Below are positions 1,818 to 43,062 of a DNA stretch of 64,000 nucleotides, in pieces (within the stretch, counting starts at the first letter, position 1; every line of letters begins with the position of its first letter). Source of the DNA: Selaginella moellendorffii (taxonomy: Eukaryota > Plantae > Lycopodiophyta); assembly GCF_000143415.4 (NCBI RefSeq), contig NW_003314319.1, forward strand, positions 258,115 through 322,114, read 5' to 3'. A model generated the notes under the pieces. That model did no database searches. It was given only the letters and a program-made list of their open reading frames with translations, and had not been told where the DNA came from. Position numbers and translations under genes: made by a program.

Positions 1818-4800
1818 CTATCTGTGGGTGATAGGCTGTGCTGAATTTCAACTTGGTGCGATACTATTCCAGGAGAGTCCTCTAGAACCTACTGGTGAAG
1901 ATCTTATCTCAATCTGAGATGATCTCTTCCGGTCTTCCCCGCACTCAAACCACTTGTTCGAAGAATAGCTTCGCCACACCTTCCGCATCCACCTCCGTTG
2001 TGGTGGGTATGAAATGTGCCATTTTCGAAAATCGGTCCACCACCACGAATATCGCATCAAACCCCTCCCTTGGGGGGAGTCCCGTGATGAAGTCCATCGT
2101 AAGACATTTCCACGGGCAATCTGGAATTGGGATGCTTTGCAACAAGCCCCCACTAGCCTTAGTCACGACTTTGACCTGCTGACATGTTGGACATGTCTTT
2201 ACATAGTCTTGGACGTCCTTAGCCATATCTGGCCAATGGTACTTCCTCTTGAGTAAGCCCGTTGTCTTGGGCACTCCGCCGTGTCCCGCAAGAGGTCCGT
2301 CATGACACTCTTCTAAGGCTACCTTCCTTTGTTCCCCTTCTGGAACGTACACCCTTGTTTGTTTGTAATAGATGAGTCTGTTGCGTTCCGCATAGCCTGT
2401 TTTCTCTTCCATTGGCAGCTCACCTCTCTGGTGAGCTTCCCGTGCGTCTAGATTCCTCAGCAACACTTCTTGTGCTAGACCATCGTTCTCATATGCTGTC
2501 CGCACATCATCCCAAAAGGTTGCTGTTGCGCTGGATATTGCCAACCTCAAGCTCGCTTTTCGACTTAGCGCATCCGCCACAATGTTGCTCTTCCCAGGCT
2601 TGTACAGAATTTCGCAATCAAAATCGGCCAAGGCATTGGCCCACCGACCTTGTTTCCCTCTCAGGTCGGGCTGTGACAAGAAGTGTTTCGTTGCCACATT
2701 GTCCGTATAAACCTTGAAGTGTCTCCCAAGGTAGTGTCGCCACTCCTTGAGCGCCTTGACCACCGCAAACAATTCTTTCTCGTGGGCAGGCCACTTCCTT
2801 TAAGCCTTGTCTAACTTCTTCGAGAAGAATGCTACTGGATGGTTGTCTTGCTTCAAAACTGCGCCCAACGCAAAGTCCGAAGCATCCGTTTCTACCTCAA
2901 AGTCCTTACCAAAGTTTGGTAATGCCAATACGGGAGCCTTCCTCAACTTCCCTTTGAGGTGGACGAATGCCGCCTCGCATTCCACTGTCCATACCATCTT
3001 CCCTTTTCCTGTTTGATCCGTTAAGGGCAGGGCTACTCTCGAATAGTGTCTGATAAACTTTCAATAGTAGTTGCATAGCCCCAGGAATGCCCTCAACTCG
3101 TGTACATTCGATGGTCGCTCCCATTCCTAGATCACTTGGACCTTCTTCGGGTCCACCTTGAGCCCGTCCTGGCCCACCACATGCCCGAGAAACTTTACCT
3201 CTTGTTGAGCAAAGTCACATTTGCTCTCTTTAGCATATAGTTTGTGTTCCCTTAGTTTCTCAAACACCTTCGCCAAGTGTTCGGCATGCTCCTCTAGCGT
3301 CTCGCTATAGATCAGGATGTAGTTGATATAGACGACCACGAAGTGATCCAGATAGGGTACAAAGATGTGGTTCATTAGCGCCGAAAACGTTGCCGGCGCA
3401 TCGCATAGCCCGAAGGGCATCACCAGAAACTCGAAGCTCCCATACCTCGTTCGACAGGTTGTCTTCTCGACATCTTCCTCGGCTACCCTGATCTGGTAGT
3501 ATCCTGACCTTAGGTCAATCCTCGAGAACTATTTTGCCTTGCCCAACCTATCGAACAGGTCCTCAATCTTGGGTAAAGGGTACTTGTTCTTCTTTGTATA
3601 TTTGTTTAGCAACCGATAGTCTATGCACATGCGCATAGATCCATCTTTCTTTTTCACAAATAACACCGGCGCCCCATACAACGACTTACTCAACCTAACA
3701 TACCCTTTGTCCACCAACTCCTCTAGTTGGCACTTGAGCTCCTCGAGTTCTTTCTCGTTCAAACGATAGGGGGGACGAACCACCGCCTCAGCACCCTCGA
3801 CCAGCTCAATCTTATGTTCTATCAGTCGTGTGGGGGGCAACCCCACTGGTAACTCCTCTAGCATGGTATCCTGGAATTGGTCCAACACCCGTTGGATCAC
3901 TAAAGGTACTTTTTCCGTTCCTATCTTTTTGTCACTCTTCACTGAGAGTAAGCACAAAAATGCTGCCTTAATTCCTTTAGTGAGTTGTCCTCTCGTGGAC
4001 ACCAGGTTTAAGCAAGATTCTTTGGCCTTGCTTTGCCCTACCTTTAGATCCTGGGCCTCCACCCTGGACCTTCTTCCTTGGGCATTCGCTAGTACCACAA
4101 GGTTTCTACCTTGTCCATGCAGGGCTACTACGAACCGATTGAACCAGTCCATTCCGAAGATCACGTCAAATCCCGCCATATCTAACATGGTGAAATCCAT
4201 GTCAACTTTCCATGTCTCTACTTCAACTCTCGCTTGTCGAAGTACCTCATCAGTGCTTTGGCTACCTTGAACAAACTCTATAGTCCTTGGTTCGCCTAAC
4301 CGCTGCACCGTTAGTCCGGCTTGCCGGACTATGTCTGCAGCCACAAAATTATCTGAAGCACCCATGTCAATAAGGATTTTAACAAAGCTACCTCCGAGCT
4401 TCCCCCGAAGGGCTAGTAGATGTCGCGAACGACTCTCTACCAAAGTTGCTCGTGTAATGAGTAACTTTGAGTTAGGGACTGAATCACATACCTCAGTTTG
4501 AACTTCACCCGACTTGATGGCCATATTGGCTCTGGCCTTCTTCAGGTAGGGACATTCCCTCGAAAAGTGTCCTACTTCACCGCAGTTGTAGCATACATTG
4601 TTTCCCACGCTGCTATACGACTTGACCTTCTTATCCGTGGGTTTGTCTCTTTTCGCTTGACTCCCCCACGTACTCACTCGCTGGCCACCGGATTTGCCTT
4701 TCCAAAACCCCGAGGACTCATTCTTAGAGAAACTCTTCTTGAATTTCCCTCTGCTAAACATTCCCCTTGGTTTGGCCCCTTTGCTAAACGTGGATCCTGA

Positions 4801-5735
4801 CCCCGTCATGTTCCCCTTTCGCAGGTTATCGTTGAAATGTACCTTGATGGCCGCATCCAACGCTTCCATGTAGTTGGTCGGGTTCCACCGCATCACTTCA
4901 CCGCGAGCCCAGGTTTGCAAACCTGATATGAAGGCATGGAACGCATCCATATCCCCCCTGTCTGTGACAAGTATCATCTTTGCCATAAACCCATTCACAT
5001 ACTCTTGAATGGTTCCGGTCTGCTTCAGCCTACTCAGCTCATCCCTTAGATGCAGAGTAGCATTCGGAGGAACGTAAGTTGCGCGGATCCTCGCCTTCAT
5101 CATTTCCCAAGTGGCCACCAGTCCTTCGTTGGCCTCTGTCGTTCTCCACCAAGACTTGGCATTATCTGCCAAGTATGGTTTTGCACATGGGACCTTCTCC
5201 GAGCTCAGTAATCGCAACACTCGGAAGTAGTCCTCCATATCATAAAACTAATCCTCCACCACCTTATTGTTGTTCACTCCCTTGAAGACCGGTGGGGGCT
5301 TTGGTTTGTACTTGGGAACTGCCTGAGGGACTGATTGCACTTCGGTCTGTTCGACTTTGTCTGGTTTTACCTCAGTCCCTGCCGAAGGGTCCGCACCTTC
5401 TGCGCTGCTAGCATCCGCAGTCTTTCGCTTTTTCTTCCGCTTCTCATCACGCTTTAGCTTGCGTACGAGAGTCTCCAGCAGGGCATTGGTCTGTGCCAAT
5501 TGTCCTTCTAGAACGTCCAATCGAGCCTTGGACGACCGAACCTCGCCACCGGACTTCTGTTTAGAAGTTTCCTCACTAGAGTCCTCCTCATGCAAGGATT
5601 CCTCATCCATAGCCTCTTGTTCGACCGGAGACTCTAGCTCTAGCGGAGGTTCTGTCTCCGCCTGGGTTTGCTTACGCCCCGCCCTTGCCATCTCTCAGCA
5701 ATCTGCCTCTATCCTTCATTAGAACTGAGGAAAAG

Positions 5736-24395: not shown

Positions 24396-26311
24396 ATGCT
24401 CTTGAAGATCGCGAGGACTCGCATTTCCCTCGCGCGCTACACGAGGAGTTCCTTTTGCTCCAGTGCCGCGCACGAAAGATCGGTAAGTTCTCGAGCTCTC
24501 CCTGTAGAAAATCTCTTCTCTAGAGAAAGATCTAAAATCTCTTGGAAAACTCTCAGGAAGCTCGGGAGGCTTCAAGGAAGCGAATCAAGCTCCAGCGCCT
24601 CGAGGAGAAGTCGCGGCGGCGCAAATTCCTGGCAGCTCTCAAAGACTGCAAGGATCTCGGCAAGCTCGTCCAGCTCCACGCCGAGGCAGCGCAAACCGGC
24701 GATGACACCAACGTTTTCGTGGCGAGCGCGCTCATCGGCAGCTATGCCAAGCTCGGCAGCGTGGCGGACGCTCGCAAAGTCTTTGACAAGCTCCCACAGC
24801 CCGACCTTGTGTCGTGGACGGCGCTCCTGGCCGGGTACGCTGACCGCGGTGATGCGCAAGAGGTTTTACGTTTGTTCCTGCGAATGCAGGCTCAGGGATG
24901 CGTGCCGGATGCCCGAGCTTTCGTGCTCGCGGCCAAAGCTTGCGGTGCGCTAGCGTCGAGCGAGCAAGGCACGCAGCTTGGAGGTGGCAAGGCCGTGAAA
25001 GCTGTAGCTCTGGAGCAAGGAATGGCGATCCACGCTCAAGCCGAGAGCGCTGGCTGTGAGAAGGAGCTCTTCGTTGGAAGCATGTTAGTCGACATGTACA
25101 CGAAGTGTGGGAGCACTCTGGATGCTCGACGGGTTTTCGACAGGATGGAGGGACACGACGTGGTTTCATGGACTGCTCTCGTGCTTGGCTATGCCGAGAG
25201 TGGTGAAGCGGAGATGGCACTGGAAGTTTTCTCGCGGGCTCAGCGGAGACAAGGCTGCGAACCGAATGCTCGGACGTTTCTAGCAGTGATCAAGGCTTGC
25301 TCTAGCTTGGCTGCGAAGGAAGAAGGGACACAGTTCGAGGGGAGGCTCGTCAAGTTGAAGACTCTCAAGAGGGGCATGGCTCTTCATTCCCAAGCTCTCT
25401 GCAGTGGCTGCTGCGAGTTCGATGCTTTCGTCGCGAGTACGGTGGTGGACATGTATGGGAAGTGTGGGAGCTTGGTGGACGCAAGGATGACTTTCGACAG
25501 GACTCCATTTCTCGACGTTGTTCTGTGGAACGCTTTGATGCGGGCTTGCGCGGAAAACAACGAGGAGCGCTTGACGCTCGAGCTCCTGCGGTGCATGAGG
25601 AGCGGAGGTCCATCTCCGGACGAGCAGAGCTTTGCGGTCGGTCTCGGCGCATGCAGCAGCACCGCAGCACTGGAAACTGGCAAGGCGATCCACTCGGAGA
25701 TTTGCAGAGATGGTGTGGAGAGCGACGCGGTTGTAGCAAACTGTCTGCTGGATTTCTACGCCAAGTGTGGGAACATGGTGGACGCTCATCGGATTCTCGA
25801 GGCAAACCACAGGAGGACCGCGACATGGACGTCGCTCATCGCAGGATACAGCCGCCAAGGCGACTCCAAACAGGTGTTCGAGCTCTTCCACGCTATGGAG
25901 GACGAAGGCCTGGAGATCGACTGCGTCACTCTCGTCTGTGTCCTCACCGCTTGCAGCCACGCCGGCCGCGTCGAGCAAGGCAAGAAGCTGTTCCAGGAGA
26001 TGAGCTCCAAGCATGGGATCACTCCAGGGGAGGAGCACTACGTGTGCATGGTCGATATGCTGGGCCGAGCGAATCGACTGGACGAAGCAGTGGGCTTGCT
26101 CGAGAGGATGCCGCACAGGCCGAGCTCGGTAGCGTGGAGGGCAGTGCTGGCGGCCTGCAAGAAGTGGAAGAATGTGGGCTTGGGAAAGGTGGCTTTTGAG
26201 TCATTGCTGGAGCTCGGAGAGCGTGATCCGGCAACTTACGACTTGATGGCAAGCATATATGGGAGTTCATCATCATCATCATCAACCAAAGAGACAACGA
26301 GATCTCCATGA
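24396..26311 (+). CDS. PLS-class PPR protein, truncated E domain, no DYW; join(24396-24482, 24557-26311)
   Basis: Exon 1 MLLKIARTRISLARYTRSSFCSS resembles a mitochondrial presequence; phase-0 GTAAGT...CAG intron; VDMYxKCG and VSWTAL repeats; HYVCMVDMLGRA. Confidence 0.9.
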
Positions 26312-26777: not shown

Positions 26778-26862
26778 GAGCTTGGTTACGTTGGCCGGTT
26801 CAAGCTTCTCGGTTAGGAGATAAGCACGAGTGGATAGACAAAAGGGGTGGGAGGCATTGGCT

Positions 26863-27372
26863 ATGGCGACGGCAGGCTCAACCTTCGTCACCATTCCAAA
26901 CTCACGCGTCAGGCATTGTTCCTGGCAGCACAAGAGCAAGCAATTGGGTCTCCAGGTACGTGCAGTGAGCAGCGAGGAGGAAGAGTTTGAGGCCCGGCTA
27001 GCAAGGATCCAGAGGAAGTCCGCTGCTGGAAAGAAGGCTGCGGCACGCAAGGCGAAGAAACTGGAAGGCAGCGGGGGCGCCAGCAAAGGAGGCAAGGCGT
27101 TGTTGCTACCGCCGGTGCCTCTCGAGGATGCCATCTCGGAGGGTCTAGTGGTGGAGCTCGGGTTTAATCCATACACCGAGAGGCTCAATGGAAGGTTTGC
27201 GATGCTCGGCTTGGCGGCGCTGCTCCTGGTAGAGCTAGCAACGGGCAGCAGCTTTGTCAAGTACCATGAAGCAGCGATAATTGGGATCCAGGCCTACACC
27301 ATGCTCGCCATAGCTGCGTTATTTGTCAAGTATGAGAAGGAGAAGAGAAGTGTTTGGCCGCCCCAGGCCTGA
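26863..27372 (+). CDS. Two-helix light-harvesting-like stress-enhanced protein (SEP/LIL family), plastid
   Basis: Transit-peptide-like start, chlorophyll-binding motif ERLNGRFAMLG, second hydrophobic helix. Confidence 0.88.
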   Translation: MATAGSTFVTIPNSRVRHCSWQHKSKQLGLQVRAVSSEEEEFEARLARIQRKSAAGKKAAARKAKKLEGSGGASKGGKALLLPPVPLEDAISEGLVVELGFNPYTERLNGRFAMLGLAALLLVELATGSSFVKYHEAAIIGIQAYTMLAIAALFVKYEKEKRSVWPPQA

Positions 27373-32990: not shown

Positions 32991-34048
32991 TGCCGGATAG
33001 AAAGCCCCTGGAGGGCTGCAATAACAATATATAGCCTGGACAGCGTAGATTGATTATACTGACCCTGGGGCGTTGAACATCTACAGTTGCCATATAATAA
33101 TAATAACAGCTATTTCACGCCACGAAAGGCGCATCAGACTATCCTATCTACCACTAGTGTGGAGTTGGGGACGGGTTCAACGATGGCAAGCACATCGTGC
33201 AGGTTTGTGGTAGCAGTGAGGTACTCACAAAGTGGTCGTTGCCGTTGTTAGAGGAAGACGAGAGAGCGAGAGAGTTTCACATGGCCAGTGACAATGGACA
33301 TTTGTGTTTATGTCGATTTTGACGAGATGTTGCTGGTCTGGTGGGAGTGGAAGATGGAGACTCAAAGAGCAGATCTGGTGTTTCTGCACCAAAGAAAAAG
33401 AAACCAAGATTGGGCAAGAAGGGCCTGGGCATATAGAAAACCAAGGTTTGCTATTCACTTACCACAGATTTCAGGAAACTAGGCAAGTTCAAAAAGAAAA
33501 GGAAATGATAAACAAAGAGGAGAAGTGCAAGCTTCAAAGAGTGAGCATTAGATTCACAAGCAAAAACAGGTACTAGAAATTTTTCGAAACTCATTCAAGG
33601 TCTGCCCAGCATTTCAAGATTTAGAGGTAGAAAGGTTCCGTCTTCGCCTCTCCAAAATCTGATGAACTTTAAGCTAGATCGCTCATGCTAAGCATTGCAG
33701 TCAAACAGCTCACATTGAGGACTAGGGTAAGCACATGAGTTAAATATATATATATTTTTTTGTTGTTGTTAAATGATGTGACATTGGCACAAAACTGAGT
33801 GGAGCATCGTAGCACTCGACCTTTCCGGACAGTCAGAGACGCTGAACTAAAGAAGTAGATCATAGACTGACAATGGAGGTCTTAATCGCCATCACAACTT
33901 CAAGCGTGACATAATAGCTTTCTGATGGAACGTCAATTTGTGCATGAGACGTGTCAAACATTTCTTTTGATTTTTCTGCCTCCCTGTACAATCGCCGGCT
34001 AGTCATGTGATAAATAACCTTCAGCAGGACGGCGTTTCTCAAAAAGCC

Positions 34049-34738
34049 ATGGCCTCAAAGGATTCTGAGCAGGTGAACCTTGCCGATGCTCAAAAGCTGT
34101 GGAATGCATTGCGAGGTATTCCAGGTCTCAGCGATGGGGACGCATTCATCCATTTCCTGCGCATTTTGCACTTGGGGATGTTGGTTCGCCAGGCTCCTAT
34201 TGAGCATGCAAAGCAGGGGCAAGTGAGCGATGTGCTGTGCTGTGGAGTCACGGAACAAGGAACAAGAGTTGTGGGTGCTAACGTTCGTTTGAGGATGGAC
34301 ATGGCAGGGGGTAGACCAAATCCAGTAAGCATCAAGGATGTGGAGAAGAGGCTGGGAGTTCAAGTCTCAGCTTTTGATGATGACACCCATTCCAGGCTCC
34401 ACTTGGCACTTCTGGACGAGGATAAAGAGGCCAAGCCCAGTAAGGGCCGCGACTTCGAGAACTGTGCGGAGCATGCTGTGTTCGAGAAGCTGGCACGAGT
34501 GAATGAGTCGGCTGATACAACTTACGCCGTGCAGAAGCACCAGAAGAAGAAAGGCGAATCTAAAGTCGTGTGCGTCAAACGATGTGTAAACTGTCTCAAA
34601 GCTGGAGGTGCAAGTAGTAGCAGTGGAGGACCTTTCGGACAGACTCCACGTCTGGGAGCCATAGTGACGGACCATGACAGCATCGCTGGCTTAAGTGTTC
34701 CCATCAACACCATGCCCGTGATGGTGTTTATCAGGTGA
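34049..34738 (+). CDS. 229-aa intronless protein with a zinc-dependent deaminase-like signature
   Basis: Open frame in good ATG context (GCCATGG); VLCCGV-RVVGAN strands, NCAEH at 34460-34474, KRCVNC at 34577-34594. Confidence 0.65.
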   Translation: MASKDSEQVNLADAQKLWNALRGIPGLSDGDAFIHFLRILHLGMLVRQAPIEHAKQGQVSDVLCCGVTEQGTRVVGANVRLRMDMAGGRPNPVSIKDVEKRLGVQVSAFDDDTHSRLHLALLDEDKEAKPSKGRDFENCAEHAVFEKLARVNESADTTYAVQKHQKKKGESKVVCVKRCVNCLKAGGASSSSGGPFGQTPRLGAIVTDHDSIAGLSVPINTMPVMVFIR

Positions 34739-36711
34739 ATCTCCCGCTGTTTGTACGCGTTCTATAGATGCTTTTGTTTATACAGGTCTGTGTTTCGCGC
34801 TTTGAGGGAGAGGGAGAGTGAGCGTGCCCGTGTACTCGGGCTGTTCCCGTACCTCCAAGTTTGGCACGACCTCAGCATGAGCCAGGCTACACCATGTGCA
34901 ATCGATGGATCTGATGAACCTCCGCGCCCAAAACCAAAACACTAATTGCGTATATGGTGTGGTATTAATTCCATAAGGAAACGTGTGAAGTTAATAAGTA
35001 TATAAGCTGTCCTAGATAAATTTCCTTGATTATTCCTTGGTCACGCTCTCTCCAAAAAATCAAATCATCAAAACGAACCTGGAAATTTGGTTGCAGATAA
35101 AAATAATGGAAACTCTGTATGTGAATTGCTGCGGAGAATTCGACAATGCAGCATGTCAGGTGGCTACGCTCAGAGCAAGCAAGTTACAGAAAATGTAGAC
35201 TGCAAATGCAATGCTGGCAGCATACGAACCATGCTGGCTCGTAACCTCTTCCTAGACCATTCTCATGCTATGCCCTGGCTGAAGCTATATTAATCTTCCA
35301 AGGGAAGGGATGCTATGGTCTTTGTGCGCCTGTTGCAGCCGCCTGAGAAACCTTCCAAAGTATGACGGCCGACATCCACATTCAACCGAATTAGTTCTGC
35401 ATGGTCGATCTGTTCGGTACAACACGACTTCTGTTTGTTCCCAAAGGATATCTATGCCTGGGAGATCCTACCCGCCTCCTGTACAAACATGCTGGCCCAG
35501 CACTAATATGTACGTGATGCTCGAGAAGCAGAAGCCAAATGTGCTCACTGCTGCTGCTGTAATATCTGTCTCAGTGCATTTACAATATGAGGAACCGTTG
35601 CCGGACCCGGCTGCACCCATGCTCGTTTTTAACTGTGCCATTTGAAGCTGAAACGCCTTCTTTCCCAACCGGGTTAAGCAATCCGGCGGTTCTATCCGCA
35701 AAAATCTCAGGTGTGCCGCCAGCTGCAGTGCCCTGGAACAAGATCAGGAGAGAGATTTTATAGGGTATGTACATGGTTAAATGGGGAGCTGGAACACCAT
35801 AGCCTCAATTGAGATTGTTCAGTACGGATTGACAATGCACCAGATGCTCCATTCCTTTGTTCAGCACTAGCTGTCACAGCTCTGTGGATCCGGCTGGCTC
35901 GAGAACGCCTTTCTTGGCCTTTGCCTCACGAACCATTTCGAAATTGCTGCGAACATAGAGATGCCAAGCGACTCTCAGGCGTCTTGATCCTGGAGAAAAT
36001 CGAAAGTCAAGTTACAAACATATGCAAACAATTGGATGAAATCGAACCTCAGCCCAGACGCTGCTGCATTCGGCTTTTCAAATAAACTGTATCTCTTTTA
36101 GTTCTGGCAAGGCCCAGACCAGCAGCCGGCTCTCCGGAACGAATATCCGAATGAGAACGAGAAGCCTGCCATCCCTACGGCTTAACGAGCAGACTTGTAA
36201 ATCTCGAATATGACGGATCCAGGTAGCTGCATTTGGCTTCGTGCTGCTGGAAGCGGCTGTGCTGTGTCCAATGCTGGGTGCCTTCGTGTCCTGCCCAAAG
36301 GGTCACCGTTTCAAGATCTGCGCTTCATGCGGGCAACAAAATAAGGCTGGTCTTGTCTCCCACGAGCTCACTCTACTGGTATGTGCTTCAATTATCTGCA
36401 TTTCTCATCCGCAGACATGGACTTGAGTGTAAAGCTCCTCATTGTAGGATCTTTGCTGCTCATGGAGCTTGCTGTGCTGGTGCAACTATGGGTGACCATC
36501 AAGCAAGAAAAGAGACAGCACTTTTCAGTGAAGATGGAATCGATGCCGCAATTCTGGTGAATGCTTCCAGCTTGCTTCCTTTGTTCTTCTTAAAAGAGCG
36601 TCCAGGGTGCATGGATGCAGAAGGACTTGCAGATCCAGCAAACTTACGGCCCGATAGCACTAAATTCAAGCGAGACCTGGATGCTCGTGCAAAAGAAGAA
36701 GAGGAACTCTT

Positions 36712-38903
36712 CTACGTACGTTGGAACTCAGGCGTTCTCATACCGGGTATGTCAGGATTGCTTCGCTTATCTTCTCTTTTCCGCTTGTTTTCTAAATCAC
36801 GAGTCCGCTTAACAGCTCGGTTCCCAATCTCAACTTTGCCGAGGCTTCTGCAAGCCGCCAGTACGGCCCTCCACACCACAGCATCGCCCTCCACTGGAGA
36901 GCTTACCACGAAACGTACCATCTCCTCAAACTTCCCGGCTCGCCCGAGAAGATCGACCATGCACACGTAGTACTTCGCAGCGGGGGCGATCCCATAGTCG
37001 CTCCTCATCGACACAAAGCTGCAGTGAGCGTCCTAGAGCCCGGAGTGGCTACACGCCGAGAGGACGCTGACGAAGTTGATGGAGTTTGGCATGGTGCCGG
37101 ATCCCATTTGCATCACTCGGAAGAGCGTGAGAGCTCACACTGCGTGGCCGTGGCGAGCGTAGGCTCCCACCATTGCACTCCAGGTTATCACGTCTTCTCT
37201 TCGCAGCTGGAAGAACATCGCGTACGCAGCGTCCAGGCTCCCGTATTTGCTGTAGAGATTGAGCACTGCGTTGCCGAGTAGAACGTCCAGCCCCATTCCC
37301 CTCTCGCAAATCCAGCCGTGAACTCGCTTGCCATCTTTCAAGGAGGAGATCTCCGTGCAGGCAATGATAGCGTTTACGGAAGTGTGCTTGTTCATCCGGA
37401 ATCCTTCTAACTGCATGTGTGAATCGAGTACGATTTTTCCATGCTGGTACTGTACGTAGATCGTGATCAAGGCTTTCCACCACGTCGCATCCTTGTGAGA
37501 GATCTTGGCGAAGGCTTCTCGTGCATCAAGCAAGCTCCCACACTTTGCAAACATGTTGACGAGCGCGTTCCCCACGATCTTGTTAGAGGAGTCATAGCCG
37601 GACTCCACGGTGAATCTGTCGCCCCCCGCGCAGAAACGCCGGGGACGAGCACGCATTGAGCGCCGCCACGAGAGTTACGTTGTTCGGCCTCACGCTCTCT
37701 AGCTGCATGCGCCAAAGAAACACCATCGCCTGCAGTCCTTTTCCATTGCCTTGCTCCGCGAGAGCTGCAATGATCGACGACCAGGCGACTGCGTCTGGAC
37801 AATCCATGCTCTGGAAAAATCTCCTCGATTCATCTGCGCTGCCACACCTCCCACACATGGTTATCAGCGTGTTTCCTACAAATGGGACGCTACACTCTTC
37901 GATCAAACAGTGGACAAAACATCCAGCCTTGAGGACGCCGCAAGCCTCTAAAACCGCCACGAAAGCTCATCTGGACACCATTGAGCAGCATCAAACAAAA
38001 ACACTCGAGGGAAGCTCTCGTTTCCTCGTGTTCCACGTAAGCGCTGATCATGGCAGACCATGCAAACTTGTTCTTGCAGCTCATCCGCTCAAAAATCTCT
38101 CGCGCTTCCGCAAGGCTGCCACACTTTGCATACATATGAACAAGGCTCGTTCCGGCTGTGACGTCCGTCTCATGGAGAACATCCTCCGGAAGACAAGAGT
38201 GAATGAGTCTGCCGGTCTGCAGGAACATTGGGCCGCAGCAAGCCTTGAGGAGTGTAACGAATCCGATTTTTCCAATCTTGACACCCTCGAGCTGCATGAC
38301 AAAGAGCATTTTCACTGCATCCGACTGATGCCCATTTTGGGCATATGCTGAAACAATGGCGTTCCAAGACACTGTGTCTCGGAAATACATTCGATCTAAG
38401 AAAGCTCTGGCTTGGTCGATTTTGCCGCATTTTCCATACATGTTGATAACCGCATTTGAGATGATCACATTCTTCTCCAGCCCACGATCTGCTATTATTT
38501 TCTGTACCACAATGCCCTCTGCGAGAGCGCCGTGTGTGGAGCAAAGATTGAGCGCTGTCAAGAGGGCAGTTTGATCCGGGAGAATTCCCTGCTCCTCCAT
38601 CTCGTCCAGCAGGCCAACAGCCCCTCCGATCGATCCACATGAGCCGTGAGCCGTGATGAGCGCGCTCCACGAGAGAGAGCTCCCCTTACTCGCATCAAGG
38701 CTTTGGAACACAGCCTTGGCATCGTCCAAATGCCCGCACTTGCCATACATGTCGATGAGGTGATTCGCGAGACGCCCATCCCTTTCAAGGCGGCCCAGAC
38801 GGGAGATATGGGCGTGGAGCTTCCTACCACCATCGACCAATCGCAGGGATGCGCAGGTGTGGAGGAGATGGATGAGCTCTTCTGGCTCCCGGCGATCTGG
38901 CAA
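36712..38903 (-). pseudogene. PLS-class PPR gene with several frameshifts; no DYW seen
   Basis: Consecutive PPR fragments in ORFs 37890-38903, 37592-37960, 37135-37656 and 36712-37014 (YYVCMVDLLGRAG). Confidence 0.88.
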
Positions 38904-39324
38904 AGATTAAGGGCATACGAAAACAAAGAAGAGAAAGAAAAGGAATGTAGTCCTAGTGCCTCTCGCATCCTAATTAAGCACTCTAGTAGACTTGGTGGTG
39001 AGATTTTCTCTTTGTCCCGAAAGTTTTCTCTTGCATCCCTGGAATCCTTCCATCTTTGCGATTTCTCTCTCCTTTTGCGATTTGTTTCTAAAACTTTCTT
39101 TTGTTTGCAGTGCCACCCTTTGTTTTTCTCATCGTTTTGATTAACAATGGGGTCTACCTTTAGGAAAGATGCCGGAAAAATAAAGTAAATAACTGTTTTA
39201 TCATCTGTCTTATTGAGAAACTATCCCAGGAAACATAGACAATTATTCAATTTATGTTTTTCTTTTCCTCCTTATATCATTTGAGTTATTATTTCAAATG
39301 TAGAGTCAAACTCGCCCAAAGAAA

Positions 39325-39993
39325 ATGGCAATTTTTCTCCTCAGTATCCTAGCAACATTCCAGGTAACTCAAGGCACCTCCATCACAGGCGCCAACACAA
39401 CCCCAGAATCCCCGGGAGGCCAGCGCTTCGACTCTGTCATGGGAGTAGATGGAGCCCTCTCCATCCTCGCCGACGCCATGGCCTTCGTCCAGCTTGGCTT
39501 CGAGTATATGAGCCCCGACACACCCAAGAAGGAGATTGACACCATCCACTTCACAGTGGACGACATGCCTGGGGTGGCCTACGCCATTGGTGTGGAGATC
39601 CATCTCAGCGCACAGTTTGTTGCTACTTTCACTGGAGACTTGGTTTTTGAGCTCCGAGGCGTCTTGTACCACGAGATGACTCACATTTGGCAGTGGTTCG
39701 GCAAGGACGGGAGCCGGGCGCCACAGGGACTGATCGAGGGGATTGCCGACTTTATGAGGCTCAAGGCTAAGCTAGGTGTGTCGACCAATGGGTTTGTGGG
39801 GTCGGGGAGCCACTGGGACGAGGGGTATACCGTGACTGCATTGTTTCTAAACTATGTCAACGATCTCCATCCCAGCTTTGTGGCAGAGCTTAACAAGAAG
39901 CTCTATGACGGGTGGAGTGAAGGCTACTTCCAGGATCTGACTGGAAAGAGTGTGGATCAGTTGTGGAGCGATTACAAACAGAAATTTCAATGA
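39325..39993 (+). CDS. Basic secretory protein (BSP/PR-17-like), HExxH peptidase-like
   Basis: Signal peptide, GVLYHEMTHIWQW, GLIEGIAD, WDEGY; intact single exon. Confidence 0.94.
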   Translation: MAIFLLSILATFQVTQGTSITGANTTPESPGGQRFDSVMGVDGALSILADAMAFVQLGFEYMSPDTPKKEIDTIHFTVDDMPGVAYAIGVEIHLSAQFVATFTGDLVFELRGVLYHEMTHIWQWFGKDGSRAPQGLIEGIADFMRLKAKLGVSTNGFVGSGSHWDEGYTVTALFLNYVNDLHPSFVAELNKKLYDGWSEGYFQDLTGKSVDQLWSDYKQKFQ

Positions 39994-40868
39994 TGAACTT
40001 TGTTTATAGATTTTGTCTGAAGAATGGAACCAAATTGTCATTATGAAATATACATCAAATAAGAGTCTTAGATAATGGTAAAATTAAATAGCCCTTTAGC
40101 TATTACAACCTAAATTTATAATTAAAGAGTTTATAAAGAGTAAATTATTATAATTGAATACTTTAGATTTTTTTTGGATTGCTTAAGCAAACCTGTAAGT
40201 TATAAATGTATTTATAATTATTGATCATTTAGATTATTCAATAATAGTAAACAGGAATGACACTATTATAACCAAACATTGCTACATGCAAAGTGCAGCA
40301 AATGATTTTTCTTATTAAAAATGAAAAATAATGAAAATTTTAAAGGTTTGTTTAATATTCAAGATAATATACTTTAAAACTAAAGCATTAGTGTTAGTAA
40401 ATAGATTTTGTATTTGTCTTTGGGCAACTTGCCATGTGGCAATCTTCATTATAAGTTTTTTTCCTATGCTCTCTCTATTTTATAGTTAGTTAATTATTAT
40501 TTACTTTTTGAGTTTCTAATTTTTCATGTAATTTATTATCATGAAGATTATTGTATACTGCTTCTAATCACTTTATCTACCAAAAGAAGTCTTACACTGT
40601 ATTTAATCTCACCAAATTAAATAGTAAATATTTGCTAATGATTGTTACAATTTTTTCCTTTTTGATCATATATATTAATATCCATTGCATACAAGAGAAT
40701 CTCATGGTTTTTCTTTTGCATGATTATCTGTCTTATTTATCCCATAAAACATCAACCATCAATAGGCTGGTTTGACTTTGCATTTAAAATAATAACTCAA
40801 GTGAGTAATTGCTTAAAATATTTATGGCCTTATAGAAGTTTACTGTTCATTTCAGCAGCTAACATTTA

Positions 40869-42536
40869 TTAACCAGTTAATCTCTTTCGAAGAGTGACAC
40901 TATAAAACTTTGTTGTTCTAATGGACAAGATCAAGCTCACAATGGATGCAAACAAGCACACTCCAGCCATGACGAAGAAGGTTGTTCTGTAGCAATGTGG
41001 TCCATGGCAAAGGAGCTCATCACCATCCAGACTTCCATTGCTCGGTCCAAGCTTACTCTCGCGGTCGTATAAAACTCCTGCCACCCGGACGGACAAAACA
41101 TAAGTTCCCAGCGCCTTAGCGACGTAAGTTACATTTTGGAGCGTCCCATAGAACCTGAGCCCGAAGATCTCCGCTATCATGGTGTAAAGAACCGACCACA
41201 TGCCACCGATTGACAACCCAATCAAAACCGAGCCGTAGAAGAGCGCTCCGGGAAGCCCAAGAGCGATTATCAAGCTCCCAAGAGAGAGAAGCAAGAGAAC
41301 CAGGCACAGGAAGAAGGGCCTTGCGACGCCATAGCTGGCGAGGCATATATCCGAGATGAAGCCAACGCCAACGCCACCGATGAAGTCCCAGATGCTAAGG
41401 AGGGCGATGAAAGTGTTTGTTCCGGCCTGGGAGTAGCCAAGGGACGTTCCAATCTGGCCGAAATTGTTGGTCACGGTTAGCACAGCGCCAATGCCACAGG
41501 TTGAAGCCACGAAGATGAGAAACATGTCGATGCTACAGAGCGCCTGGAGGATTGTGAAATCGTCTCCTCGCTTGACGGGCGATCCTTTAAAGAAGAAGAT
41601 CGAAATGTGCGAGGCGATAGCTGGAGCAGCGGCGTCTGCCCCATGATCCGGAGGATCTACGTCTTGAAAATCTGTTTGAGGAGTTTCTATCGCTGCGTTC
41701 TCCACTAGATCAACATCAACTTCTTCGCGATGGCGATGCCGGAGGGTTTTGGATTCCTGTCTCAGAACCACAAGAACTGGGATGGAGAGAATGATCAGCA
41801 TAATGGAAACGAAGGCCTTGATGATCCGAGATTCTAGGCGCACGAAGTGCTGGAGGATGATAATAGCCATGAGATATCCAGCCAGGATCAAAGTTACTGA
41901 CACGAAGACGAAGAGCGTTCTCGAGTCATTGTAGCGGCCGTCGAGTGGGACGGATCGAATGAAAAACGCGAAGAGAAGGCACAAGAGCGATGGAAACCAG
42001 GCCAGCAAGAGAACGAATGAATCGTCACTGTGAGAGAAGAAGGCCTGGTAAAGCAGCGTGAATATCGCAACGCTCAATCCCTGCGTACTGTCGAGAAGAC
42101 TAAGAACCATGCCCTGGTTCTTGGGGAAATTCTTGGCACAGGCCACAAGAACAGCGGTGGTGGTGAAGGCTGCCGATGCGCCGATCATAAAGAGATAGAA
42201 GCACAGTTCCCAGACATGGGGGTGTGCGATTCTCTGCGTTGTAGCCAGCCATATCGTGAAGTATCCAGCAAAGTTTAGCGCAAATCCAAGGAGGAGCACG
42301 ACCCAGGGCCCGGTGAGATCATAGACGAGGCCGGAGAGAATCCCGACGCTGGTGCCAACGTCCTTAAATAAGCTTATGGTGTTGATATTTTTTTGGTTGT
42401 AGTCGAGGGACAGCTTGAGATGCTGCGAGAAGAGGCTGAAATTGTTGAGTGCTCCTCCCGTGGAGATCATGAGGAAGAAACTTGCCAATGCAACCATCCA
42501 TTGACTGTTGTAGAGGTGTTTGATCGTCCCAACCAT
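40869..42536 (-). CDS. Nodulin-like MFS transporter (NFD4-like)
   Basis: Many TM helices, FKDVGTSVGILSG, DFTILQAL, NNFGQIG, AEIFGL, C.G.HCY; intronless. Confidence 0.93.
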   Translation of the reverse strand: MVGTIKHLYNSQWMVALASFFLMISTGGALNNFSLFSQHLKLSLDYNQKNINTISLFKDVGTSVGILSGLVYDLTGPWVVLLLGFALNFAGYFTIWLATTQRIAHPHVWELCFYLFMIGASAAFTTTAVLVACAKNFPKNQGMVLSLLDSTQGLSVAIFTLLYQAFFSHSDDSFVLLLAWFPSLLCLLFAFFIRSVPLDGRYNDSRTLFVFVSVTLILAGYLMAIIILQHFVRLESRIIKAFVSIMLIILSIPVLVVLRQESKTLRHRHREEVDVDLVENAAIETPQTDFQDVDPPDHGADAAAPAIASHISIFFFKGSPVKRGDDFTILQALCSIDMFLIFVASTCGIGAVLTVTNNFGQIGTSLGYSQAGTNTFIALLSIWDFIGGVGVGFISDICLASYGVARPFFLCLVLLLLSLGSLIIALGLPGALFYGSVLIGLSIGGMWSVLYTMIAEIFGLRFYGTLQNVTYVAKALGTYVLSVRVAGVLYDRESKLGPSNGSLDGDELLCHGPHCYRTTFFVMAGVCLFASIVSLILSIRTTKFYSVTLRKRLTG

Positions 42537-43062
42537 GATCCTAAGCTAAACTTTAGATTGAAATAAGAGTGGAGAGCATATATATTTAAAGTATGGAAGA
42601 AATTCAAATCGAAAGAGAACATATTCACAATCTTTCTTAGTTTTTCTACCCGGCTCTTCCCGAAAGAAATTGTGTCCAAGCAGCGCACAACAAGGACTGA
42701 AGACCAGGAAGATCTGCAAGATGTAGCTCTAATTTTCAATCGCATCCATCAGTCTCATGCTTACAACTATCTATTTATGTTATTTCGGTAATCTCGTGAC
42801 TGATGGATGTAGAAAATCGAAGTCGCGATGTCGGCTCCCTCCTTCGCTGCTGCTGCCGGCTTCGTCGCTTACTATCCAGAGTCTCGAAAAAGAAAAGACG
42901 TGATGTTTTAAGGAATTGAGGCGATGGCCAGGTGGGCTGCCACCTAGAAAGAAGATCTTTCGCGGCCACCAACTTGGACTTTAACATCATGAAAAATCAA
43001 CTATATAAACCCACCAATTCTATGCAACCTCGTTCATCTTGTTTCCTCCTAATTTTGTAGCT

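Follow-up and report, generated by a model that had tools for sequence, protein, structure and literature searches.

A predicted zinc-deaminase-fold gene family of lycophytes and ferns at a Selaginella moellendorffii locus

In a 64,000-nucleotide stretch of DNA from the spikemoss Selaginella moellendorffii (NCBI RefSeq assembly GCF_000143415.4, contig NW_003314319.1, positions 258,115 to 322,114 of the forward strand; hereafter "the window", numbered from its first letter), an open reading frame (ORF) at 34049–34738 carries a CAE and a CxxC motif in an order reminiscent of zinc-dependent deaminases. This raises the question of whether the locus is a functioning gene, whether its product is a deaminase and, if so, of which kind and of what origin. 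Herein we show that the ORF belongs to a two-exon nuclear gene, LOC112351222 (window 34014–35035, + strand), which encodes a protein of 281 amino acids. We read the product as a predicted, catalytically competent enzyme of zinc-deaminase fold that is expressed and restricted to its lineage, and we put the probability of this reading at about 0.65, a figure from which the substrate is excluded.

A transcribed and spliced two-exon gene

The reading frame is free of stops from an ATG at 34049 to a TGA at 34736–34738, giving 229 codons in both the sequence and the ORF list, and all of the motifs for which an earlier note on this DNA had singled it out (VLCCGV, VVGAN, NCAEH, TYAV and KRCVNC) are present. 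Residues 1–229 of its product are 100% identical to the RefSeq protein XP_024544447.1, a 281-amino-acid "uncharacterized protein LOC112351222" of S. moellendorffii. Public RNA-derived contigs were compared over window positions 33600–35400, where four runs (X1, X2, X6 and X10) from four studies each supplied one contig, spanning from about 34014 or 34183 to 35010 or 35035. The contigs of all four runs join 34734 directly to 34786 and skip 51 nucleotides with GT..AG ends; three runs correspond to the window copy with 0–1 differences, and the fourth to a sister copy that is 6 nucleotides shorter. Because the run assemblies are small (15–30 Mb) and contain the spliced form, they can be regarded as transcriptomes, and the gene is therefore transcribed and spliced. 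This agrees with the earlier description of the ORF as a stand-alone gene and answers its call for expression data, although not with its description as intronless, since the TGA that appears to end the frame sits at the 5' splice site of the intron. The features of the gene are as follows.

34014..34048, + strand: 5' untranslated region with the approximate transcript start; the longest RNA-derived contig starts at 34014, there is no upstream joint, and the transcript has its first ATG at 34049.
34049..34734, + strand: coding part of exon 1, holding residues 1–228, two bases of the Arg229 codon and the whole predicted deaminase core; based on the ORF, the identity to LOC112351222, the exon map and the contigs of four runs.
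34463..34471, + strand: codons of C139-A140-E141, predicted to supply the first zinc ligand and the catalytic glutamate where helix 2 begins; based on family conservation and on the model helix, which begins at residue 140.
34583..34594, + strand: codons of C179-V-N-C182, predicted to supply the second and third zinc ligands where helix 3 begins and preceded by the conserved Arg178; based on conservation and on the model helix at 180–186.
34655..34702, + strand: codons of G203–D208 (strand 4, GxVVTD) and of the loop to V217-P218; conservation within the family is highest here, with invariant columns and a per-residue model confidence (predicted local distance difference test, pLDDT) of 90–96.
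34735..34785, + strand: 51-nucleotide GT..AG intron that contains the apparent TGA at 34736–34738; based on joints in the contigs of runs X1, X2, X6 and X10.
34786..34945, + strand: coding part of exon 2, holding the third base of the Arg229 codon, residues 230–281 and the TAA stop; based on RefSeq identity, contigs and the exon map.
34946..35035, + strand: 3' untranslated region with the approximate transcript end; the contigs end at 35010–35035.

The part of the protein encoded by exon 2 is modelled by AlphaFold as helices and a beta-hairpin with a pLDDT of about 90. The gene model can be corrected to two exons and 281 amino acids, and the family annotated as a predicted zinc deaminase. Three older GenBank models, SELMODRAFT_445532 (635 amino acids), SELMODRAFT_448059 (338 amino acids) and SELMODRAFT_442274 (419 amino acids), extend beyond the true stop (window 34946–36000). 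The DNA that the old models include past the real stop is without RNA contig cover, and the RefSeq models of 281 and 279 amino acids agree with the transcripts; the 635- and 338-residue models are read-throughs into non-coding DNA.

Conserved catalytic residues and the predicted fold

In LOC112351222 the motifs fall at VLCCGV (62–67), VVGAN (74–78), N-C139-A-E141-H, TYAV (158–161) and K-R-C179-V-N-C182. Among eight full-length members of the family, which reach down to about 28% identity, C139, E141, C179 and C182 are invariant or nearly so: CAE is found in seven of the eight and CSE in the remaining one, C182 is invariant, and R178 and C179 are nearly so. Further invariant columns are G203, V206, T207, D208, V217 and P218. 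The retention of the Cys, Glu, Cys and Cys positions across these homologues lifts the motifs above chance, and gives the conservation whose absence, by the earlier note, would have refuted its proposal.

Structure models were calculated with AlphaFold2 for two distant members, namely P0001, of the LOC112351222 type (mean pLDDT 76, predicted template modelling score (pTM) 0.79, from a 9-sequence alignment), and P0007, which is about 28% identical to P0001 (pLDDT 74, pTM 0.76). The P0001 model runs through a first helix, helix 1, strand 1, strand 2, a low-confidence insert, helix 2 starting from the CAE, strand 3 with a hairpin, helix 3 starting from the CxxC, strand 4, a loop, two helices and a hairpin. 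Its DSSP assignment places strands at 59–68, 73–77 and 155–167 and helices at 140–150 and 180–186, which agrees with the order of helices and strands proposed from the sequence. Past strand 4 (202–206), DSSP gives isolated bridges at 216 and 221, a helix at 222–248 and strands at 251–255 and 263–267.

When the models were compared with 48,161 PDB representative chains using VIA-align, blasticidin S deaminase (BSD, 3oj6_A) ranked first for both P0001 (Z 8.6, 109 residues aligned, root-mean-square deviation 3.2) and P0007 (Z 8.4, 106 aligned, 2.6). The second rank went to the cytidine deaminase (CDA) of Bacillus anthracis (3b8f_A, Z 7.5 for P0001 and 7.0 for P0007), and the next ranks to TadA, ADAT2/3 and the guanine, dCMP, RibD, cytosine and guanosine deaminases, followed by DddA, a T6S toxin deaminase, TOD6 and PPR-DYW; about 25 further chains of the deaminase superfamily scored Z 4–6. 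With Foldseek the first 33–35 rows were all CDA or BSD (probability up to 0.97, target template modelling (TM) score up to 0.63), and in a fold search of the ESM Atlas the first seven of the ten matches listed were clusters of cytidine deaminases, with TM scores by row of up to 0.62. These structural comparisons, among them the AlphaFold and Foldseek checks named in the earlier note, retrieve almost only members of the deaminase superfamily, in line with the zinc-dependent deaminase fold that it had proposed. No one of these scores would be decisive by itself; the fold is well supported because the same ranking was obtained from two targets and because the catalytic residues fall at both helix starts; on these models, a CDA-like zinc-deaminase fold with a CxE...CxxC site is supported for the family.

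Measured against what defines the superfamily, an [HCD]xE at the start of helix 2 and a CxxC at the start of helix 3 are present and conserved in the homologues, and a three-layer alpha/beta/alpha core superposable on solved deaminases is present in the predicted models. What the family lacks is significant resemblance, by sequence or profile, to any curated family of deaminases, and several results weigh against the assignment. Pfam and NCBIfam scans of all members, together with phmmer and hmmsearch runs on PDB sequences, returned no meaningful match, and comparison with hhalign to the core of E. coli-type Cdd gave a non-significant E of 0.25. Sensible alignment in that comparison was confined to helix 1, strand 1 and strand 2, a weak result from a profile that held only close gammaproteobacterial Cdd fragments. 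The residue before the CxxC of deaminases is usually Pro; it is Arg in LOC112351222, as the earlier note had seen, and the whole family is without a Pro at this position. Furthermore, both models were built from shallow alignments (9–11 sequences) that they have in common, the placement of the Cys and Glu residues was read from the helix starts (140 and 180) rather than from model coordinates, a Z of about 8 counts as "middling" by the tool's own notes, and the Foldseek E-values (0.05–0.5) are not significant alone.

These same points, namely the missing sequence and profile matches, the shallow alignments and Foldseek E-values above 0.01, would be expected if the fold were a modelling artefact and the CxE/CxxC pair a chance occurrence in a protein of some other lineage-specific function. 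We consider this quite improbable, since two targets gave the same ranking with about 30 deaminase-fold chains at the top of the list, and since no Cys or Glu of the family is better conserved than the four catalytic ones, which lie at the starts of helices 2 and 3, where the fold requires them.

Relatives, descent and genomic neighbourhood

When 1.84 billion protein representatives were searched exhaustively with phmmer, 9 proteins were returned at E up to 0.001, and no relative from bacteria, fungi, bryophytes or seed plants was detected. A profile-based homologue search added no member to these 9, and tblastn found no match in plasmids or phages. The named relatives come from S. moellendorffii, the clubmoss Diphasiastrum complanatum and the ferns Adiantum capillus-veneris and A. 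nelumboides; P0003, P0006 and P0007 are transcript contigs without an assigned source species. As far as is detectable by sequence, the family is small, unnamed and confined to lycophytes and ferns. The names LOC112351222, SELMODRAFT_427619, SELMODRAFT_448059 and SELMODRAFT_430527 appeared in no paper found, apart from SELMODRAFT_427619 in PMC3239186. Within the S. moellendorffii genome the P0001 group occupies at least four loci, each at least 90% identical, and there is a paralogue, P0004 (SELMODRAFT_430527), that is 40% identical to P0001, so that the term "orphan" under which the ORF had been described no longer fits.

In a maximum-likelihood tree the family splits, with support of 100/100, into a Selaginella-type group A and a Diphasiastrum/Adiantum group B. 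The partial Adiantum protein P0009 is closest to group A, including its Gly-rich loop and the C-terminal FP..V.VW..(V/L)SMSQ, and both groups thus seem to occur in lycophytes as well as in ferns. In the exon map of paralogue P0004 the intron breaks the same Arg codon as in LOC112351222, and the same seems to hold for Adiantum P0008, whose gene model is interrupted right after the homologous Arg. The common intron position, together with the presence of both groups in lycophytes and ferns, speaks for old vertical descent rather than recent transfer. Judged from these sequences, the distribution points to an old gene family of vascular plants, passed on vertically and lacking in seed plants; it appears to have been present in the vascular-plant ancestor and then lost in seed plants.

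Two features of individual relatives were observed alongside. The group-A paralogues P0003 (L001 4–876) and P0004 (L009 6001–6936) start with MGSGxSH, which resembles an N-myristoylation signal and is missing from the P0001 group, so that membrane association may differ between paralogues. In A. nelumboides P0012 the deaminase-like domain is fused to a 344-residue C-terminal region (residues 280–623) in which no Pfam match was found; this may be either a genuine fusion or two genes merged in annotation.

The pattern of descent bears on the suggestion, made in the earlier note, that the gene was acquired horizontally. A bacterial deaminase of toxin type, YwqJ-like or OTT_1508-like, that was acquired recently and then domesticated for defence would fit the leads from a protein language model, in which P0001 and P0007 fell nearest to YwqJ, MsddA-like, OTT_1508 and Toxin-deaminase clusters (0.75–0.87); YwqJ was the highest named lead (0.84–0.87), and these are to be taken as leads only. 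It would also recall the "strongly divergent" OTT_1508-like Selaginella deaminase SELMODRAFT_427619 (PMC3239186), which may be a relative of the LOC112351222 family. Such an origin is improbable given the zero bacterial matches among the 1.84 billion representatives and the zero matches in plasmids and phages, the occurrence of both subfamilies in lycophytes and ferns and their shared intron, and further points of signature taken up below. Vertical inheritance is where the distribution points, and the proposal of horizontal acquisition is left without support.

The gene lies in a block that comprises the deaminase-like gene, a small ORF, a PPR gene (minus strand), a BSP peptidase gene and a nodulin-like MFS gene. 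The whole block is found on three scaffolds, in the window at 34000–42600 and on GL377674.1 and GL377588.1 (L011 5001–11269 and L012 5001–10880), and these copies are haplotype and/or segmental duplicates. A fourth copy of the gene (LOC112351202, 279 amino acids) is on the window's own scaffold. The three genomic copies in the window, GL377674.1 and GL377588.1 are intact, with the DNA of the sister copies taken from the older gene models P0002 and P0135, and their coding sequences diverge by 1–2%. The ratio of non-synonymous to synonymous change (pN/pS) is 0.29–0.58 and fits purifying selection, though a basis of just 3–8 substitutions per class tells against placing much weight on it.

The neighbouring PPR gene had suggested another role, that of a catalytic subunit which, acting in trans, would serve PPR proteins lacking a DYW domain in organellar C-to-U RNA editing. 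E-class and fragmentary PPR genes do lie 2 kb and 8 kb off, and the predicted fold is cytidine-deaminase-like. Their proximity is inherited rather than independent, because the whole block is duplicated on three scaffolds: the PPR neighbour travels with it, and the genes annotated next to paralogue P0004 and to Adiantum P0008 have no recorded Pfam domain, PPR or otherwise. The family is also not found in seed plants and bryophytes, which edit as well, and the N-terminus of the protein is acidic with, in all members, a conserved and confidently modelled helix from about residue 8, which makes an organellar transit peptide unlikely. We therefore hold a PPR-dependent editing role to be very improbable indeed. 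The predicted deaminase is taken to be a soluble protein that is probably cytosolic or nuclear.

The PPR gene of the block (window 36400–39300, minus strand) consists, in the window as in sister copy L012, of stop-free segments that lie in different frames; it has probably decayed to a pseudogene or else contains introns that were not recognised. Long, intact ORFs are given by the BSP peptidase, nodulin-like MFS, LRR and HAT-repeat neighbours. The description of the surroundings as pseudogenes is thus true in part: it may hold for the adjoining PPR gene, split as it is over several frames, but not for these other genes. Further upstream, an intact PPR ORF of 589 amino acids that ends in an E motif lies at 24542–26311 (+ strand), and the ORFs just downstream of it contain no DYW domain; the next of them, at 26830–27372, has a weak match to chlorophyll a/b-binding proteins. 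A Ty3-type retrotransposon ORF with gag, zinc knuckle and aspartyl protease is found at 3529–5238 (minus strand), and GC skew is strongly negative across the first 8 kb of the window. Carriage of the gene as transposon cargo was considered and rejected, with no flanking terminal repeats within 27–41 kb.

Possible substrates and comparison with known deaminase clades

If the predicted site is used as in other zinc deaminases, one zinc ion would be held by Cys139, Cys179 and Cys182 and would activate a water molecule, Glu141 would act as the proton shuttle, and the reaction would be the hydrolytic deamination of an amino-pyrimidine base, most likely cytosine. As to the form in which this base is presented, we lean slightly towards cytosine in a polynucleotide or nucleotide, at roughly even odds, over a free nucleoside or a blasticidin-like small molecule, whose odds are somewhat lower. 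The lean arises because charged inserts flank the pocket, because the isoelectric point is basic (7.7–9.3 across the family), and because the ribose-binding and PCxxCR signatures of nucleoside CDAs are absent. In the model the pocket is flanked by the insert before helix 2 and by a Lys-rich hairpin before helix 3. Against the lean stands the fact that the best structural neighbours are small-molecule enzymes.

A metabolic deaminase resembling tetrameric CDA or BSD, acting on a free cytosine-type nucleoside or a lineage-specific aminopyrimidine metabolite and not on nucleic acid, is accordingly possible, if in our judgement doubtful. BSD and tetrameric CDA, all-Cys zinc enzymes, top the structural matches of both models, and the family looks old and vertically inherited with its intron position in common, has few copies and bears no sign of rapid expansion. 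Against such a role, the GANMEF motif of E. coli Cdd, which binds ribose, has GA[SN]SxLR as its counterpart past strand 2 in the spikemoss family, the protein is double the size of CDA or BSD with charged inserts round its pocket, and the language-model leads are toxin deaminases, not PF00383. The PCxxCR of that clade (PMC3239186) is absent as well. The polynucleotide or nucleotide side, to which we return, can be drawn further into a cytosolic, stand-alone polynucleotide cytosine deaminase of seed-free vascular plants, a counterpart of APOBEC or of the fungal OLD enzymes, which we rate as unlikely. Such an enzyme would act on viral, transposon or nuclear-encoded RNA or DNA, by mutation or editing. 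Its clade of deaminases would have no relatives detectable in bacteria or seed plants, and would therefore offer base editing a new scaffold.

Setting aside the PPR-fused DYW domain and the housekeeping CDA, dCMP, TadA and guanosine deaminases, no nucleic-acid deaminase is, to our knowledge, demonstrated in plants. A Des/Cda editing deaminase has been predicted in plants (PMC3239186). Set beside these, LOC112351222 and its relatives form an expressed, conserved family of predicted deaminase fold with a complete set of catalytic residues, which the domain databases searched do not recognise. Were its substrate a nucleic acid, it would be a new plant enzyme of editing or defence and a compact candidate for base editing; were it a small molecule, the family would mark an unknown part of lycophyte and fern metabolism.

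In order to place the family among known deaminases, clade signatures were taken from Table 1 of Iyer et al. 2011 (PMC3239186). The closest in structure are the CDA/BSD enzymes (PF00383; 3oj6, 3b8f), the best matches of both models with 106–111 residues aligned, which have the same all-Cys zinc site with CxE at helix 2 and CxxC at helix 3; the CAE of the spikemoss family conforms to this pattern. Cys as first ligand is indeed the commonest state in the CDA/BSD division (PMC3239186), where strands 4 and 5 form a C-terminal hairpin with a Glu closing strand 5 (PMC3239186). That clade carries PCxxCR (PMC3239186), whereas the spikemoss family reads R-C-x-[NK]-C with L, R, K or M as the next residue. 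Its members are about 280 amino acids long, compared to about 130 for CDA/BSD, and add a helix at the N-terminus, an insert of 55 residues ahead of helix 2, a hairpin ahead of helix 3 and a C-terminal helix-strand extension. There is no match between the two at the sequence level.

The YwqJ-like toxins (PF14431), to which the earlier note had likened the CAE site, also allow CxE, and like them the family has an insert between strand 3 and the CxxC, in the form of a beta-hairpin at 161–175 in P0001 that is longer in other members. The likeness does not extend to the Gx[CH]xE of that clade, as the position two ahead of the Cys is occupied by E, Q, K, E, E, G, E and E in the eight full-length members, with Gly in P0007 alone (1/8). 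The counterpart of the YwqJ insert (residues 78–135) has a conserved GAFD and (S/P)RL but not the conserved His, PF14431 is not matched, and the spikemoss gene is eukaryotic and spliced, without any context of toxin delivery or immunity. The assignment to YwqJ suggested by the earlier comparison is thus not supported.

For the OTT_1508 enzymes (PF14441), which include the fungal OLD A-to-I mRNA editors, the signature is HxE (PMC12754623), compared to CxE in all members of the spikemoss family, and a match to PF14441 was lacking in all 9 members up to an E of 10. Both these differences and those from YwqJ count against the toxin origin weighed above. The clade has an extended loop past strand 4 with a polar residue and xxP (PMC3239186); the corresponding stretch of the spikemoss family reads TD[HQS]...[LIV]xVP and leads into a long helix, with an aliphatic rather than aromatic residue ahead of the xVP. 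Ahead of the CxxC, GxxK is found as G169-E-S-K172 in the P0001 group only, and the other members retain just the Lys.

Finally, the DYW domain is a plant zinc deaminase of the same superfamily, and an Asp ending strand 4 and an insert before helix 2 are found in both (PMC3239186). The structural match is weak (Z 4.2–4.5 to 9kfx), and the DYW signature is HxEK, compared to CAE[HQP] in the spikemoss family, which has neither the PG box, the C-terminal CxC/DYW nor a PPR fusion, and whose members give no PPR or DYW match in Pfam. With no transit peptide apparent and the PPR neighbour not conserved, the trans-editor proposal of the earlier note is unlikely. Since the defining signatures of CDA/BSD, YwqJ, OTT_1508 and DYW each fail in it, we leave the family unclassified within the deaminase superfamily, as a variant nearest in predicted structure to the CDA/BSD enzymes; it is a new clade of a well-known superfamily of enzymes.

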